Shown piece by piece: positions 5,457-63,099 of a DNA stretch of 64,000 bases. Each line of letters starts with the position of its first letter. Positions within the stretch are counted from its first letter, which is position 1. The translations under genes were made by a program, and so were the position numbers. Origin of the DNA: Paraphysomonas bandaiensis (Eukaryota > Protista > Chrysophyceae). The notes beneath the pieces are model-generated. The model was not told the DNA's origin. It did not search any database and worked only from the letters and a program-made list of their open reading frames with translations. The stretch lies in NCBI GenBank assembly GCA_965644295.1, contig CBFFRP010000241.1, positions 62,001 through 126,000 of the forward strand. Reading direction: 5' to 3'.

Positions 5457-6076
5457 CTACAGGTCATTCTCGGATGCAACAGCAGCTTTGAATGCTTCCC
5501 GCGCCTCAGATACAGGCTTACCACCTTGCTTGACCTTATGAATCTCTATTTCGAAAACCAAGGGTGTGTAAGGTGGTATGCGAGGAGGACTGCCACGCTC
5601 GCCATAAGCTAGGTCGTAAGGAATGTAGAGCTTCCACTTGTCGCCCTCGCCCATTAACTGCATTGCTTCTGTCCATCCCTGTAATATAGTAACATTAAAA
5701 AATCACAGTTATGGAATATAGCCAGACCTTAATCACTTGATTAGGGGCAAAAGAAGTTGTTCCTTGATCAAATCCTTTCCCATCGCGAAAAGTTCCTTTG
5801 TAAGTCACTTCACAAGTGTCAGATACACGTGGAGACTTTGCATTCGGGTCAGTCCCCTGGATAGAGACCGTTACATAACAAAAGTACACATCAATACTAC
5901 CAAACCTCTTTCAAAATCTCAACAAGCATGCCTGATTTGAGTGTTATAACTCCAGGTTCTTTGGATTTCTCATCTAAGAATTTCTTTCCGGTGCGCTTGT
6001 AGTACTTGTTCATATCAGCCGATGAGATTGCAAGCAATGCAAGCGTCAGTACGAAGATAAGGAGAGATTTTGTCAT
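5457..6076 (-). CDS. FKBP-type peptidyl-prolyl isomerase (Mip/FKBP_N type) with signal peptide; 3 exons
   Basis: Spliced: MTKSLLIFVLTLALLAISSA...GKKFLDEKSKEPGVITLKSGMLVEILKE / GTDPNAKSPRVSDTCEVTYKGTFRDGKGFD...PNQVIK / GWTEAMQLMGEGDKWKLYIPYDLAYGERGSPPRIPPYTPLVFEIE; two GT-AG introns. Confidence 0.93.
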
Positions 6077-6178
6077 TTCACCAGTTTTGTCTGTTAAAAG
6101 TTAATAGGAAAATATCTCTTGGGTGATGAGATCCATTGCTGCAACCCACACCCAGATTCCAGAAGCAACACCACAGCA

Positions 6179-6765
6179 ATGTATGTATGTATGTATGTAT
6201 GTATGTATGTATGTATGTATGTATGTATGTATGTATGTATGTATGTATGTATGTATGTATGTATGTATGTATGTATGTATGTATGTATGTATGTATGTAT
6301 GTATGTATGTATGTATGTATGTATGTATGTATGTATGTATGTATGTATGTATGTATGTATGTATGTATGTATGTATGTATGTATGTATGTATGTATGTAT
6401 GTATGTATGTATGTATGTATGTATGTATGTATGTATGTATGTATGTATGTATGTATGTATGTATGTATGTATGTATGTATGTATGTATGTATGTATGTAT
6501 GTATGTATGTATGTATGTATGTATGTATGTATGTATGTATGTATGTATGTATGTATGTATGTATGTATGTATGTATGTATGTATGTATGTATGTATGTAT
6601 GTATGAATGTATGTATGTATGTATGTATGTATGTATGTATGTATGTATGTATGTATGTATGTATGTATGTATGTATGTATGTATGTATGTATGTATGTAT
6701 GTATGTATGTATGTATGTATGTATGTATGTATGTATGTATGTATGTATGAATGTATGTATGTATG

Positions 6766-6797
<32 letters not shown>

Positions 6798-6866
6798 TGT
6801 ATGTATGTATGTATGTATGTATGTATGTATGTATGTATGTAGTATGTGTGTATGTATGTATGTATG

Positions 6867-6897
<31 letters not shown>

Positions 6898-6914
6898 GTA
6901 TGTATGTATGTATG

Positions 6915-6945
<31 letters not shown>

Positions 6946-6977
6946 GTATGTATGTATGTATGTATGTATATGTATAC
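6179..6977. repeat. (TATG)n microsatellite, about 800 bp
   Basis: Direct inspection. Confidence 0.99.
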
Positions 6978-7237
6978 ATGGGTCTGACTTCAGGATATTT
7001 CCAAGATATGTTCTACACAAGTCCTCTATACCATACATATTGTGAGGGAGAGCGGGTGTGAAAAAAACTTTTTTTTCTCTCTTCTTCAATCTTCTTTGAT
7101 CGCGATTACAAAACTTGCTCACCTACATTAAACAGTACCATAAACCCACAATTACCCATGATAAGCACTGCAAATCAAGGTGATTTCTTCTACAATGTGT
7201 TGAAGCAACCTTCTCTCACATGTTTGTCATTCGCAGC

Positions 7238-8910
7238 ATGTCATCAGACAGCCAAAACTCTGAAATAGAAGAAGGTCTGTGGGTGCGAGTAAAAATTGTC
7301 GCTTTGACTAAATTTCGAGAGGAAGCACAGGCATTCTCTGTAAATCGGTCCGAGTTAACTTCTTCGACAGACCAATTAACGATTTGGGTGAGAATTACTG
7401 CAATTACTGTTAAAGATGTTTTAATATAACATTGTTTTTAGATTCCAGGAGGTAATCTTTTTGAAGACGATAGTAATATCTGGCGTGTCAAAGGTCATGC
7501 ATTCTTGCATGCACTCGTTGAGGGCGTAGCGAGGCAAGCGTATAATCAAAAGTTATTGCCACCACTATCAGACTTCAACGACCAACTCAGGATAGACTTC
7601 AGCAGAGGTATTACTGTTCGAACTGCAACAAGTTCTGGTATCATTGGTAATTTCCACATGATCCCTCCCGATGGAGAATTGGACATACTAGACGCCAGAC
7701 AGATCACGATAGGAAGTGTTGTCGGGAAAACGCTTCCCACTATGTGGTGATTGCTGGTGTCCCGTTCCAAAATTGCCCAGACGATGTGATACTACAGAGA
7801 CAGCTCAGCTTTGTTGATTCTTCCCTTGCGCTTGTTAAACATAAACAGAATGATCTTCCCCTCTGTAAATACATGCACTCAAAATATTTCAAAGTTGGCC
7901 TGAATCATCGTCCAGGAAATGATATGAACACGTACTGGTCACCGGCAATGAAAGAAGCCATGACCGAGTGCAGTGAAGAGGGTCAAAGACTCTTCGAGCT
8001 TAATCCTCCAAAAAGTATGCAAAGTGGTATCCGTAAGCAGAGAGGATTTGGTCACGGTGGTCAATCAGGTCTTAAGCTTTCAACCGCCAGTGAACATGAT
8101 GCGGCGGACACATCGAGTCATTTGGAAGCACAAAGGAATCGCTTGCATATCGAGCGATGTCGTGCCAAAGCTTGGAGCAAGAAAGATTTGATTTCTGATA
8201 GCAAATTGAAAGATCTACTCGAGCTTCCCGAGGGCAAGAAAGTAAAGAGCTACTCGCAGTTAAGAACATACTTATGTGAATACTTTAGTACCCTAGAAGG
8301 TGAAGAACGTGCAGCTGAAGACCCGTTGGAGTATGACCCGACACTCGATACATGGGTTCTCAAGTTGGATTGGATGGGTCAAGGCTTCCCAAAATATAGT
8401 GACCTCAAGGGGGGTAATAAGCCAATACCTGCAGCCCGTGAAAATATCATATTCTCGTCGGTTCGAATAGGACCACACCCGCCACCACCACCGCCCCCTG
8501 CTCTACCAGCTCCTCCAGGTGTTCCAGCACAAGGTTGGCCTATCCCAATTGGTGTTCCCCCTGCTGGAAGTAGTGGCCCTTCTTTTGGTGTCCCTTTTCC
8601 CCTTCCACCAGACTGTGGACCATCGCCCTACGGGGTATACCCCCCTCCTATTTATCCAACTGGGGGTTTTCCTTTTCAGCAGCAGCTTCCTCCGTATTAC
8701 CCACAGGGATCTGCTCCTCGGCATTATCCGCATCACATGCTGTATGGCTACCCGCCAGAAAATTACCACGGCCACAGGGATTTTGATTATGCATCGCGTT
8801 ATCGCCAACAGCGATTTGCCTGGGGAGAAGGAATGCGAAAGGATGAGAGGGGTGAGTGGATAGCATATGAGGCCGAGTATGAAATTCCTTATCCTGCCGA
8901 CCCTTACTAA
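7238..8910 (+). CDS. Transposon-borne hypothetical protein (spliced; Pro/Tyr-rich C-terminus)
   Basis: ATG at the inner edge of the left TIR; a 54-nt GT-AG intron 7388-7441 joins MSSDSQ..LTIW to IPGGNLFEDD.. in frame. The junction to the 388-aa ORF (7744-8910) needs a second intron (candidate 7646-7702) or a frameshift. Confidence 0.65.
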
Positions 8911-9256
8911 ATAGAACAGATTGCAGTCAATCGTTATCTGCCGGGTCTCATTTATTTTTTATTTCGAATCTTGGTAATTTTTGGATGAATTTAACACATT
9001 CGAATCGAAATTTAGGTTTAGACTCACAAACCGATTTTCTTTTTTCTTCTTAGTATGCAACTGTATGAACTGATATTTTAAATTCTCCACAAACTTTTCA
9101 AAATTTTGTTTTTTTGATTTATTAATATTACTTGAATCTATTGCGTATAATTAATCATATTCTATCACGAAGTAGTAGCAAGCATATCACATTCAATCAT
9201 CAGTACATCTATATTAGTAACTAGTGAGTAGAGTATAGAGTATAATCTGCAAATGA

Positions 9257-10288
9257 TCAATAGTTACAGGCTTCGCACTGTTCTTTCCAAGTAACGGTAA
9301 TATCCACTCGATTGAATAAATTGCACGCAGTTTCGGCAGTACAGCATGACCACAAAGCTTCATGTAGTTGAGCTGCAAGTGGTTTATATGCGTACATAAT
9401 TCCCCACTTCTTTCTAATGTGCGCTTTGGCAAGATGGAATACGGGTTCAATTGGTGAAAAATCATAAGAATAAGGGGGGAGAAACACAACCATCACGCCG
9501 AATTCTGCACACATATTATAAATATCTATCTTCACGTGCGTCGAAGCATTATCCATGAGCAGCACACTGCGATCCCCAGGAAAAGGGTTCATGTGGGGAA
9601 AGATGTCATGTTCTAGGGCATCTAGAAATGTCTTATGATCAACATTTTCTTCGTGTACAGTAACAGCAAAAACTCCTTCGATAGACATTGCAGCAATGGC
9701 ACAACAACTAACTTGGGGATTGAAGTGGCCTATAACATCACCACTCACGAAGGCAGGGTAGCCATGTGGTGAACGCCCATATCGGCGTAGAACTTCTGCC
9801 GGCTTGAGATGTGATTCGTCCACAACAGCATAGCAGCGAGCTGGAATTTCATCCAATGATCGGGCCAAATTATTCTTATAGTAACGCCTCAAGCCCTCAT
9901 TTCTGTTGTGGGAAATTCTTTGACAAACTTTTACGGTATAGCCCTCAGTGTTCATGGCATGCTTCATTTGGTGCTCCAAGTACGCCACGCCGTACACATT
10001 AAAAACCTTTTCGCATAATTCTTCGTTGGAATAAGTTGAATTTTCTGCCAGCAACTCTTTAACAAAATTGATATGCTCGAGTGAAATGACAGTGTGGTGC
10101 GAATGGTGTGAAGACTCTGGTTTAACTGATCCAGTGTCCAGATATTTGTCCAACCACCTTCTAACTGTGCTTTGGGACACATCGTATTTCTCGTATATAT
10201 GATCTAGTGATGCGGCCACAGAATTTGTGATTTCCAGAGAGTGATCAAACACATCCAAAATTAAAAGACGGAAAGCCTCGGAATACAT
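9257..10288 (-). CDS. IS630/Tc1-family DD34E transposase, apparently intact (343 aa)
   Basis: HTH (VSQSTVRRWL), VVDES, LLMDNASTH, LPPYSYDFSPIE; 34 residues counted between the second D and E. Confidence 0.95.
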   Translation of the reverse strand: MYSEAFRLLILDVFDHSLEITNSVAASLDHIYEKYDVSQSTVRRWLDKYLDTGSVKPESSHHSHHTVISLEHINFVKELLAENSTYSNEELCEKVFNVYGVAYLEHQMKHAMNTEGYTVKVCQRISHNRNEGLRRYYKNNLARSLDEIPARCYAVVDESHLKPAEVLRRYGRSPHGYPAFVSGDVIGHFNPQVSCCAIAAMSIEGVFAVTVHEENVDHKTFLDALEHDIFPHMNPFPGDRSVLLMDNASTHVKIDIYNMCAEFGVMVVFLPPYSYDFSPIEPVFHLAKAHIRKKWGIMYAYKPLAAQLHEALWSCCTAETACNLFNRVDITVTWKEQCEACNY

Positions 10289-10685
10289 GTAAATATGGTG
10301 CTGCGAATGATAAACATGTGAGAGAAGGTTGCTTCAACACATTGTAGAAGAAATCACCTTGATTTGCAGTGCTTATCATGGGTAATTGTGGGTTTATGGT
10401 ACTGTTTAATGTAGGTGAGCAAGTTTTGTAATCGCGATCAAAGAAGATTGAAGAAGAGAGAAAAAAAAGTTTTTTTCACACCCGCTCTCCCTCACAATAC
10501 ACTACAGAGTAGCTGGCCCATCATGAGGAAGTATCTATGCACTTTCCTCCACAATGTCCTAATATCCGCCATCATATTCTTCTATGTAGGATATGCAGCA
10601 GTATTCGACAGACATACACACAGTAGTATCAGCACACACATCTCTCATACTTATAAGCAACCATCCAGATATACATACCCACACC

Positions 10686-11603
10686 ATGCCAGCCTACACT
10701 CCACCTCATAAACGACACAATGTTGTTGGAAAACTCACCCACTGCTGGACACGTAAGTCAGGTGAACCGGGTTACCTCGGTCCCATGGTGTTCCCATCAC
10801 CTAACGGGAGTGGTCTGGGTATGGTCGGTCGCCCTCATATCGTATTCAACACTCCCACACAATCAATCAAAGGAACATATGTGTTCAATTGTACAAGTGA
10901 TCAATTGAATATTGCTGTAGGATGTGAACCGGGTTATGATACTGATCAGCATGGTGACCCGACAACAGGAGTACAGATGCATCTCTGGATGAACGGGTCA
11001 ATCACTTTTAGGATTCGTCCAAGTTTAAGTGAGCATGATGTACTCTTTCGTATTGTTTTACCCATGAGGCCAACTGAGGGTAGTCGATTTCGTTTTGATG
11101 TACAGCTGCGGACTAAGTGGGAGAATTGTGTTTCCTTTCGTGTTGTTGAACTGCTGGAAGGCAATGTGGATGGGTACGATACTGGCCCCGTTGTTATATC
11201 AGTACCTGCATCTAGGAGACCAAATAATGGTAATGGTGTTGCCGCTATTTATAATTGTGAGAGCGGTCGTTATTCAACTCTTGAGTCTTTGGTGGTAGAT
11301 GGATTAAATATGATGCCATCACTCCTTGAGCTACTAAACTCCGGAAATAAATATCGATATGGAATTATTACGCAGCAGGAGAAAGAAAATGATACTTTTG
11401 ATTTGCACATAGATGTTAATCCTGGATTAAAAAATGCTACTACGGTGTGCCCGTTGGAATACGACCGTCGAAAAAGAGAAAAAAAGAATAAACGAAGGGA
11501 TGGGGATAAGGGCAAGCCTTTTTTCTACCCCAAACCCCTGCAAGGGGCTTTTTCTCCGAAAGTTTCCAATTACAACCGTTCCAATTACAACCGAAGGTTG
11601 TAA
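10686..11603 (+). CDS. Hypothetical protein; its 3' end runs into the AT-rich virus-like segment (probably truncated near 11465)
   Basis: Open frame from MPAYTPPHKR; composition changes abruptly after TTVCPLEYD. Confidence 0.55.
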   Translation: MPAYTPPHKRHNVVGKLTHCWTRKSGEPGYLGPMVFPSPNGSGLGMVGRPHIVFNTPTQSIKGTYVFNCTSDQLNIAVGCEPGYDTDQHGDPTTGVQMHLWMNGSITFRIRPSLSEHDVLFRIVLPMRPTEGSRFRFDVQLRTKWENCVSFRVVELLEGNVDGYDTGPVVISVPASRRPNNGNGVAAIYNCESGRYSTLESLVVDGLNMMPSLLELLNSGNKYRYGIITQQEKENDTFDLHIDVNPGLKNATTVCPLEYDRRKREKKNKRRDGDKGKPFFYPKPLQGAFSPKVSNYNRSNYNRRL

Positions 11604-61028: not shown

Positions 61029-63099
61029 TTACTTGCTTTTCTTAGAGCTCATATCAACGGAAGCTGCGACAGTGGCAGCCGGCCCCGACAGTTTAGCACC
61101 CTTCCTCTTCTCGAGCCCGCTGGTAGCGGGAAAGGTGTCCTCAGTTGATACATTTTCAGGTCCACTCTTGCCAACTTCACCGTACAGGTTATCGTAGTAC
61201 TGATCCTCCTGCACCTTTTTCTTGGCAAATCTATAGCATCATACCATATTAATCACGTTGGGTGATATATCGCTTCGCTAAAACTTACTTCTCCTTGTAT
61301 CGTTGCCTCTGAGCATGGATTCGGTCCACTATTACCGGGGCAGTCAGCTCATTGGCTGAAGGGACCACATGTAAGATACCCATTTCCCTAGGCAGCGCGT
61401 ACGGATCTCTCTGATATGGGTACATGGGAGGTGCCAGAGTTGTACCAGGGGTGCGGTACTCCTCGTCAACAGGGTCCCATCGTTCCCCCTATGTATCATA
61501 CATCAGACGGTGTTAAGAGACCAACAAATACATTATCTACATATTATTGAAAACAAGGGGCATTTACCTCAGGTTGGACTGTTCCACGCACCACAGCAAC
61601 GATGCGCAGACTAGCCAGCATCATTTTCGACACGACGTAGGGTGCATCCAACAGGACATCGTCCACATACTTACATCCCAGTACAGAGAGAGATCGCTCG
61701 TGCATGTTCATGAGAGGGTAGTTGAGACCACGGTGGCTATTAACAACAGCATCGCTGTGTACCCCGGCAATGACGTAGTCCCCATATCTGAACACAGTCA
61801 TATACCAAATCGATTACTACACTTTACTCACTTTCTGGCCTTCTCCAACAGAGCAACATGACCCGAGTGAAACATGTCCCACGACCCAGCAACATACACT
61901 ACCCTGGCGTTGGGACCCGGAGCCTGCACTCCCGCCCCAAATAAACGAATGATATGGGAAGTCGTTAGAAAGTCCGACTTTCGGTCAAATCCAGGGGTAA
62001 GGTCGCTTTCCGTATCAGCATTACGAATTGCAAGTTGTTTCGTCACATCCTCGGCATCATCCAGATTTTCACTGCAAGTACCGTGAGAGAGTTACTACAA
62101 TACGTGATTTGGTACCTGAAAGAAGAAGAGTGATGAGACCGAGTCATCAGTAGCATGCGGCCCACTATGTCGGTGGTAGAGATGCCCTCCGTACGTGGGA
62201 TTGTCAGGTATTTGCCTTGAGAACGAAATAATGAGGTTAGCGGCATGACAGGAAGTCTACACTCACCCATTTTCTGCGCGCTTTCGTATACATCTTTCCC
62301 ATCCACGATACATGGATCGTCACCGTGAACCACATAGTCAATATTATACTCCTTTATGACCCATCGTAGGTACTCGTCGTTCATGATGTACGGTACACCC
62401 GGTACAACCTCATCAACGAACTTGCACCCTTCCACACACTGCAAACGCTCTTGATCGTTCATCACTGGAGCACCTTTGCATTGGGTGATGGTTTCGTCGC
62501 TATTTACACCTACAATCAGTTTGGTGCCAAGTGCTCTTCCTTTACGAAAAGCATTCATATGCCCATAGTGCATCATATCGAAGGCCCCATCCATCCATAT
62601 TCTAATCTCCTTTCCCTCATTTATATTATGCAGATCAGATGATTCTAAAGTCAGTAACTTTTCTTCCAAATCTCTTACAATTTGTTGAGCCTAGACAACA
62701 ATAATTATACATACACGCATGATGCCGACACTGAGATTTTCTTCACAATCTATACGTTAGTTAGCCTAGTCAACACTAGCACACTAGCACTTCACTATGA
62801 TACGCTCATGGAATGGGCGTATGATACACAACACTCACCTTATTGAGTTTACTCTCCAACTCTTTCCTGTTCCGTAAATGCTTTCGACCCAACCAGTACC
62901 AGTAACTGAATAGAGTTAAAACAATCGCACTGCATGATAGAAGGAATTGTTCTGCATCCGGAGTATGATTTTCAGGGACGCCGATGGTTGTTAATACAGT
63001 TGCGATGGTCTGAACACACAGAGTTGTGAAGGGGCTCTCTAATACACGATCGACTAGTCTATCCACCACCCCCCATGGGATGTAACTCAGTATATTCAT
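61029..63099 (-). CDS. PCYT2: Ethanolamine-phosphate cytidylyltransferase (two CT domains, N-terminal membrane anchor); multi-exon
   Basis: WMDGAFDMMHYGH, VVHGDDP, RTEGISTTDIVGRML; second domain YVAGSWDMFHSGH, PLMNMHERSLSVLGCKYVDDV. Confidence 0.93.

Follow-up and report, generated by a model that had tools for sequence, protein, structure and literature searches.

A transposon with two convergent genes

Positions 7040-10497 of a 64,000-nt stretch of genomic DNA (positions 62,001 to 126,000 of contig CBFFRP010000241.1; hereafter the window, whose numbering is used throughout) are occupied by an IS630/Tc1-type DD34E transposon with TA directly outside each end. Two convergent genes, one encoding the transposase and the other a second protein (gene 2), lie between inverted-repeat arms at 7038-7238 and 10299-10499, each of which measures 201 nt with the TA included and 199 nt without it. 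The arms of the window copy agree at 198 of 199 positions, and the sole mismatch, a G at 7226 opposite 10311, is private to this copy. On the left, homology ends 2 nt past a CAG, with the first base of the gene-2 ATG (7238), and on the right 10 nt ahead of the transposase ATG (10288). The left arm contains a 57-nt GT..AG stretch at 7180-7236, mirrored in the right arm at 10301-10357. An initial annotation of this DNA had given the same boundaries, the same repeat length and the same points at which the homology stops, and all of these were confirmed. A near-perfect inverted repeat of 199 nt recurring at 13 loci, as reported below, is far beyond what chance could be expected to produce.

The 343-aa transposase, encoded on the minus strand (9257-10288) and intact in the window copy, matches Pfam DDE_3 (E = 1.4e-18; 67.6 bits against a cut-off of 28.6) and passes the cut-off of 100 for NCBIfam IS630 with 102.8 bits. 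Residues D157, D246 and E281 are invariant in four lineages, and 34 residues separate D246 from E281. In the N-terminal region, HTH_23, HTH_32, HTH_33 and PAX gave matches with E-values of 2e-4 to 7e-3, all under the curated cut-offs. The element thus has the features of the IS630/Tc1/mariner group, namely a DD34E DDE_3 transposase, a TA duplication and terminal inverted repeats, and the earlier description of two convergent genes in an element of this type is supported. The same genome has a further DDE_3 family, with no fewer than 10 copies and in each of them an open frame of 347 aa (C2:67643, C32:46640, C78:165121 and 170409, C185, C259, C297:766497, C388 and two in C433).

Gene 2, on the plus strand, starts at 7238 with a 50-codon exon, which is followed by a 54-nt intron and a second exon ending at 8910. 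The window copy has a 13-bp deletion after 7686, which puts the reading frame out of register and leads to a premature stop at 7748-7750. RNA evidence on this and other points comes from Logan contigs of four runs from four studies (X1, X4, X5 and X9), which were aligned to 6985-10560; X4 and X9 are recorded RNA libraries, X1 and X5 are RNA by guess only, and contig depths were given no evidential use. The 13 bp are retained in the 11 other full copies of the family and in the aligned contigs of all four runs, and the intact protein has 543 aa in other full copies wherever the frame stays open. The initial annotation had overlooked this private deletion. The deletion allele is transcribed and spliced, as attested by an MMETSP protein (P0003). 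We regard the window copy as a variant of slightly greater age, with a gene 2 that is inactivated yet still transcribed.

The host genome, 62.5 Mb in 669 contigs with ~40% G+C, encodes several silicon transporters; judged from the transporters and the G+C content, the host would be a diatom-like marine alga. The family comprises 12 full-length copies (~99% identity) and one interrupted copy in this genome, 13 in all, with identities ranging from 98 to 100%, and copies of 3,475 bp were confirmed. The outer 140 nt of the end repeat has exactly 26 matches in the genome, which corresponds to 13 elements, and no solo ends or miniature derivatives (miniature inverted-repeat transposable elements) were found among these matches. 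Both genes are present in all 13 copies, and TA stands on both flanks of all 12 full copies. The flanks of these 12 are mutually unrelated, so the copies represent separate insertions and not haplotype duplicates. Half of them (6/12) lie inside (TACA)n/(TGTA)n microsatellites, which suggests either a preference for TA targets within such repeats or that the tracts serve as safe havens. A TA in an alternating purine-pyrimidine context, as in (TACA)n tracts, recalls the target consensus of Tc1.

Several lines of evidence bear on mobility. In an X1 contig, the end repeat is joined to a flank that corresponds to an uninterrupted, empty TA site at C432 in the present genome, which is an insertion polymorphism. 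The element is also present, 99.9% identical and without interruption of either reading frame, in contigs of ocean metagenomes (Tara Oceans and other projects). Because copies that are 98-100% identical sit in unrelated flanks, an empty-site polymorphism exists and the ocean contigs are nearly identical to the genomic element, we conclude that the family has recently been, and probably still is, mobile. The flank of an X9 contig was searched for in the genome and not found. Another element flank, on an ocean metagenome contig (L062:1-536), is a repeat with at least 9 genome copies of 90-97% identity, several of them at contig ends, and is for that reason uninformative on site occupancy. The interrupted thirteenth copy (4,516 bp; G000:C217) carries in its intergenic spacer a nested 1,034-bp non-autonomous hAT-like element (L014:2951-3983), which has an 8-bp duplication (CTAAGAAG), ends that start CAGGGATAGGG and a remnant hAT C-terminal region. 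An old, rearranged copy with 76-91% identity and many stop codons, in which part of gene 2 is duplicated in inverted orientation, was found at G000:C375:41222-44505 (L015-L017).

A spliced leader within the end repeats

Three introns, the 57-nt stretch in each end repeat and the internal intron of gene 2, were found spliced in RNA contigs from runs of different studies (Table 1). For the left leader, X5 record 11 joins 7156-7177 to 7235 onward, skipping 57 nt with GT..AG borders, and X4 record 8 contains the same joint as seen through the mirror arm. For the right leader, the joint 10300>10358 is present in X5 record 12 and X1 record 4, and through the mirror arm in X4 record 7. Contigs of X1, X4 and X5 skip the 54-nt intron of gene 2. 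Contigs of another four Logan runs (L083-L086) have the spliced arrangement, in which the end of the leader exon is followed by 12 unique bases and the transposase ATG. Moreover, in JGI transcript contigs L075 and L076 both the leader intron and the gene-2 intron are removed, the leader exon is present from element position 1, and the full 543-aa protein (P0008) is encoded. Transcript contigs arriving from the two sides end at 9058/9157 and 9109/9166, and are merged in X1 and X9.

On either side, the inward portion of the end repeat consists of a common non-coding exon and, after it, a 57-nt intron, and both genes make use of this portion. With leader and intron inside both repeats, the two mRNAs start with the same leader and use the same splice sites. 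The initial annotation had proposed an RNA check for splicing of 7180-7236 and its mirror, and both are spliced in contigs of independent studies. It had also proposed that splicing would remove an upstream ATG; this is so for the ATGs at 7195 and 7220, both of which lie in the 57-nt intron, and not for a third, to which we return below.

The ends of contigs within the leader have to be read with assembly in mind. Those at 7156 and 10381 fall precisely 30 nt inside the shared exon, the break expected for 31-mers, and the end at 7127 is probably a de Bruijn bubble caused by a C-run variant at 7155-7157 and not a transcription start. Ends that fall at de Bruijn branch points or at a bubble give no information on where transcription starts. 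The variant itself is an extra C/G of the window copy, relative to other copies, at the mirrored sites 7155-7157 and 10380-10382, and contigs of X1 and X5 include both alleles; both ends of one copy seem to be kept alike, through descent within a sub-lineage or through conversion.

Table 1. Features of the two-gene element, in window coordinates, with the evidence for each.
Feature	Position	Strand	Evidence
TA target-site duplication, left	7038..7039		TA on both sides in 12/12 full copies
Left terminal inverted repeat, 199 nt	7040..7238	+	198/199 match to right arm; outer 140 nt matched 26 times in genome
Shared non-coding leader exon, minimum extent	7127..7179	+	RNA contigs X1 record 1 and X5 records 9/10; upstream ATG at 7158-7160
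57-nt GT..AG intron in left end repeat (5' UTR intron of gene 2)	7180..7236	+	Joint 7177>7235
Gene 2, coding exon 1, 50 codons	7238..7387	+	Gene model; identical to P0008 over residues 1-50
Gene 2, internal intron, 54 nt	7388..7441	+	Joint 7386>7441 in X1, X4 and X5
Gene 2, coding exon 2	7442..8910	+	Copy alignment and gene models; 493 codons in intact copies
Spacer with ends of both convergent transcripts	8911..9256		RNA contig ends
Transposase gene, 343 aa, DD34E, intact in window copy	9257..10288	-	Open reading frame, Pfam, NCBIfam
Mirror 57-nt intron (5' UTR intron of transposase gene)	10301..10357	-	Joint 10300>10358, CT..AC
Right terminal inverted repeat	10299..10497	-	Inverted-repeat pairing with left arm
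TA target-site duplication, right	10498..10499		Flanks of full copies

Just left of the element lies a (GTAT)n microsatellite of ~950 bp (6019-6975), and directly to its right is an open reading frame of 336 aa (10593-11603).

Gene 2 and its relatives in other lineages

No paralog of gene 2 outside the element family was found in the host genome. A word-based search of 5.8 billion proteins with the gene-2 protein returned only the protein itself, and an exhaustive HMMER search of 1.84 billion representatives returned 6 proteins, the query's own included. Five further lineages with a gene-2 homolog were identified, and in four of them the homolog is convergent to an IS630-type (DDE_3) transposase. 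L058, a metagenome contig with the two-gene layout, encodes a transposase 64% identical to that of the window family. The corresponding identity is 54% for metagenome contigs L059/L060, whose end repeats are perfect over at least 156 nt, and 45% for metagenome contig L087, where gene 2 was recognized by a profile match of 6.4e-13. The most distant transposase (33%) is that of L055, a second family of 3,682 bp in the same genome, with 187-nt end repeats. The fifth lineage, L061, is a short Logan contig with the gene-2 homolog only, the transposase gene being uncalled on so short a contig. The L055 family (L055:1532-5213, G000:C249) lies between the arms of a 932-nt, 99% inverted repeat (L055:570-1501 and 5498-6429), and is thus nested in, or part of, a larger palindromic structure.

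Gene-2 proteins of different lineages are 43, 32 and about 20% identical, several motifs persist among them, and the intron position between IW and IP is also found in L058 and L059. Between lineages, synonymous divergence (dS) is saturated, and identity by codon position was used instead; copies within the family are too alike for a ratio of nonsynonymous to synonymous divergence (dN/dS). Comparing the window family with L058, the identities at the three codon positions were 0.51/0.59/0.32 for gene 2 (dN 0.68, dS saturated) and 0.68/0.81/0.41 for the transposase (dN 0.30). That reading frames have stayed open across lineages while third codon positions were randomised implies that the gene-2 protein has been kept by selection. 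Gene 2 is thus under long-term purifying selection, and by these figures it evolves about twice as fast as the transposase. The initial annotation had suggested testing whether both frames are retained with dN/dS below 1; retention of both genes holds in 13/13 copies.

It is conceivable that gene 2 is a captured host gene or an inert passenger, and the one point that speaks for this is that it has no known transposon-related domain. We regard this as very improbable, given that the genome has no host paralog of gene 2, that all 13 copies keep it, that its homologs adjoin the same transposase clade wherever context exists, and that its frames are intact across lineages with third codon positions randomised. 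The view of the initial annotation that the second gene is a partner and not filler is borne out by the same retention in every copy and by the conserved homologs beside transposases elsewhere.

The layout of the repeats can also be followed in these relatives. In L058, a GT..AG stretch of the form AAG/GTAATT...(58 nt)...CAG lies just upstream of the transposase ATG. In L087, a GTAAGT..YAG stretch lies within the end repeat, which extends to the first 13 coding bases, ATG included, of both genes, whereas in L055 and L059 the repeats stop short of both ATGs by 4-70 nt. By these comparisons the end-repeat design is conserved across lineages. A conserved A-run/T-run motif is located in the outer 40 nt of the end.

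The C-terminal tail of the gene-2 protein is of low complexity, Pro/Tyr-rich in the window family and Arg/Ser/Asp/His-rich (RS-like) in L055, L058 and L059. Tails of this kind are typical of nuclear RNA-associated proteins, and their composition hints at a nuclear, nucleic-acid-associated protein.

Interpretation and comparison with known systems

We consider it likely that the locus represents an autonomous, recently active two-gene IS630/Tc1 transposon, whose repeats serve as transposon end, as leader with intron and, by inference, as promoter, and whose second gene encodes an accessory factor. The outer part of each ~198-nt end repeat would act as the transposon end, and the inner part provides the non-coding first exon and then the 57-nt spliceosomal intron, which stops 2 nt before the repeat does. 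The end repeat would also supply the promoter for both inward genes, as in maize MuDR, and the gene-2 protein may help the transposase to act at the ends or to reach the nucleus, as MURB or the Myb-like protein of Harbinger elements. A promoter in the end repeat is plausible because no other DNA of the element lies upstream of the two start codons, because the same mRNAs arise from copies at unrelated sites, and because the end-repeat design is kept in other lineages.

A number of observations weigh against this reading, some concerning the family as a whole, some the leader and its promoter, and others the second protein. Most copies in the assembly deviate from the intact form by single-base homopolymer indels, and if these are real, few copies are functional. 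Apart from the deletion described above, the indels among the copies fall in C6/C7 at 8640 and G5/G6 at 9474, and their distribution follows no pattern. In Illumina-based contigs, whether of metagenomes or of RNA, C7 and G6 are present without exception and both frames are open, and since the runs are intact in all of these we read the homopolymer indels as assembly errors. With respect to the leader, an unspliced transposase leader also occurs in X1 (record 3), and a third upstream ATG, at 7158 in the leader exon, remains in both spliced mRNAs. After splicing, it opens short out-of-frame reading frames of 17 codons in the gene-2 mRNA and 25 codons in the transposase mRNA, which overlap both start codons.

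With respect to the promoter, L075 and L076 take in the outer end repeat in full together with 146 nt of the adjoining (TACA)n, and X1 record 6, a Logan contig, continues from the repeat into unique flank. From this read-through it follows that some RNA, or contaminating DNA, starts outside the element or spans its end. The idea of the initial annotation that each repeat is a complete expression cassette is therefore upheld for the leader exon and the intron, and is left as an inference for the promoter, some contigs crossing the repeat into the flank. One could argue that the long end repeats are not promoters at all, that transcription comes from flanking DNA or from weak cryptic starts, and that something else, for instance multiple transposase-binding sites or conversion of one end by the other, accounts for the identity of the repeats up to the start codons, with the intron merely tolerated. 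Besides L075 and L076, in which the full outer repeat and flank stand ahead of the spliced leader, this account draws on X1 record 6 and X9 record 13, in both of which the repeat is joined to flanking sequence, and on the six of 12 copies in (TACA)n tracts that could have their own transcription. It is nonetheless improbable in our view. The same spliced mRNAs are found in cultures and in ocean metatranscriptomes despite 12 unrelated flanks, and no contig of X4 or X5 runs across the outer 87 nt of the repeat. Furthermore, the inner border of the repeat falls, in five lineages, shortly ahead of or slightly within both coding regions, which binding sites alone would not require, and an assembler can fuse scarce read-through or DNA reads with plentiful spliced ones. 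The reading in which the repeats themselves drive both genes would be the more likely one.

With respect to the second protein, Pfam scans of six pieces from four lineages gave no gene-2 family above noise (none for P0008 and P0002 at E up to 5); in particular, TnpB/RuvC, kinase, zinc-finger, recombinase and Myb/SANT families gave no match to gene 2. Two AlphaFold2 models of the protein, built on shallow alignments, were poor (mean pLDDT 59.8 and 50.8). Foldseek against the PDB yielded no match at E ≤0.001, and the best Z of a VIA-align wide search was 4.9. From models of this quality no fold would be assignable to gene 2, and the outcome should not be taken as evidence for a new fold. An ESM Atlas feature search with gene 2 gave scores of at most 0.78 and no lead. 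A match to the LOTUS domain of Oskar (E = 0.02) disappeared when a family profile was used, and is put down to chance. Complex prediction for the transposase and the N-terminal part of gene 2 scored 0.00; run without controls, it is evidence neither for nor against binding.

VANC, the anti-silencing factor of Arabidopsis VANDAL elements, exemplifies a transposon protein with another kind of task. The main alternative for gene 2 is accordingly that its product is no transposition cofactor and acts on the host or on regulation, as an anti-silencing factor like VANC, as a regulator of the splicing or RNA of its own transcripts, or as a dose-limiting inhibitor. Pro/Tyr-rich or RS-like low-complexity tails, as in nuclear RNA-associated proteins, fit such a role, as does the faster evolution of gene 2 (dN 0.68 vs 0.30), which would be expected in conflict with the host, and Pfam scans detected no DNA-binding domain in gene 2. 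In the known two-gene cut-and-paste elements, MuDR and PIF/Harbinger, however, the partner acts in transposition itself (for MuDR: PMC10401008), and we judge this alternative to be unlikely, if less so than that of repeats without promoters. Since gene 2 has stayed with its transposase lineage through deep divergence under purifying selection and was found nowhere else, and by analogy with MURB and the partner protein of Harbinger, the second protein would rather be an accessory factor needed for the element's own propagation.

A broader proposal is more tentative, and we place it slightly short of an even chance: that these elements form an undescribed clade of eukaryotic IS630/Tc1 transposons in diatom-like marine protists, which need a second protein with a new fold and whose repeats are symmetric expression modules comprising a promoter, a leader exon, a spliceosomal intron and sometimes the start codon. 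If true, one repeat sequence would control both genes, and splicing in the repeat could balance expression against transposition. In the literature searched, the coverage of which was incomplete, no description was found of an IS630/Tc1 element that has two genes and whose end repeats contain a spliced leader. Tc1/IS630 elements are the textbook one-gene transposons, and tools such as Sleeping Beauty are built on them. If a clade keeps a second protein through deep divergence, transposition in the IS630/Tc1 superfamily would not in every case be the work of one protein. The element, apparently active and equipped with a compact, self-contained module of leader and intron, could also yield a tool for mutagenesis or expression in diatom research, and its preference for (TACA)n tracts bears on the genome dynamics of an ecologically important group, the diatoms.

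Among known systems, single-gene DD34E elements such as Tc1 and IS630 share with this element the transposase family, the DD34E triad, the TA duplication and terminal inverted repeats. Typical members of the IS630/Tc1/mariner group differ, however: they carry a single gene, their functional ends are much shorter, and their end repeats lack an intron. Extra genes are carried within the same superfamily by the ciliate TBE/Tec elements and by Fanzor-carrying Tc1/mariner elements. TBE/Tec elements are characterised by three genes, the transposase being accompanied by zinc-finger/kinase or tyrosine recombinase genes, and no domain of these kinds was detected in gene 2. In Fanzor/TnpB-carrying elements the second gene encodes a RuvC-type nuclease, whereas gene 2 has no such match in Pfam or by fold. 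To our knowledge, a symmetric two-gene layout driven by the end repeats is not the one described for TBE/Tec or Fanzor elements, the comparison with which was by their descriptions. PIF/Harbinger elements resemble the present one in moving by cut-and-paste and in having a second, non-catalytic protein that works with the transposase. They have a DDE_Tnp_4 transposase, a 3-bp duplication and a Myb/SANT-like partner, none of which is found here. The Harbinger partner protein acts in transposition itself.

The closest parallel in layout is MuDR. We know of no case in MuDR of a spliceosomal intron in the end repeat that serves both mRNAs, as the one here does. The two elements also differ in the transposase and the target site, with a MURA-type transposase and a 9-bp duplication in MuDR against a DDE_3/IS630 DD34E transposase and a TA duplication here, and their second proteins have no detectable relation. 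What they have in common is a pair of convergent genes, for a transposase and a lineage-restricted second protein, between near-identical end repeats of ~200 nt that lie directly upstream of both. In MuDR, the end repeats of 150-250 nt hold the promoters of mudrA and mudrB, and MURB is needed for insertion (PMC10401008). Of the MuDR arrangement, in which each gene is transcribed from a promoter in the adjacent repeat, the convergent layout and the shared repeat-derived leader are seen here, and some contigs cross the repeat. On the reading preferred above, the solution of MuDR, identical ends driving two inward genes, would have evolved independently in another superfamily, with an intron in the end repeat added to it.

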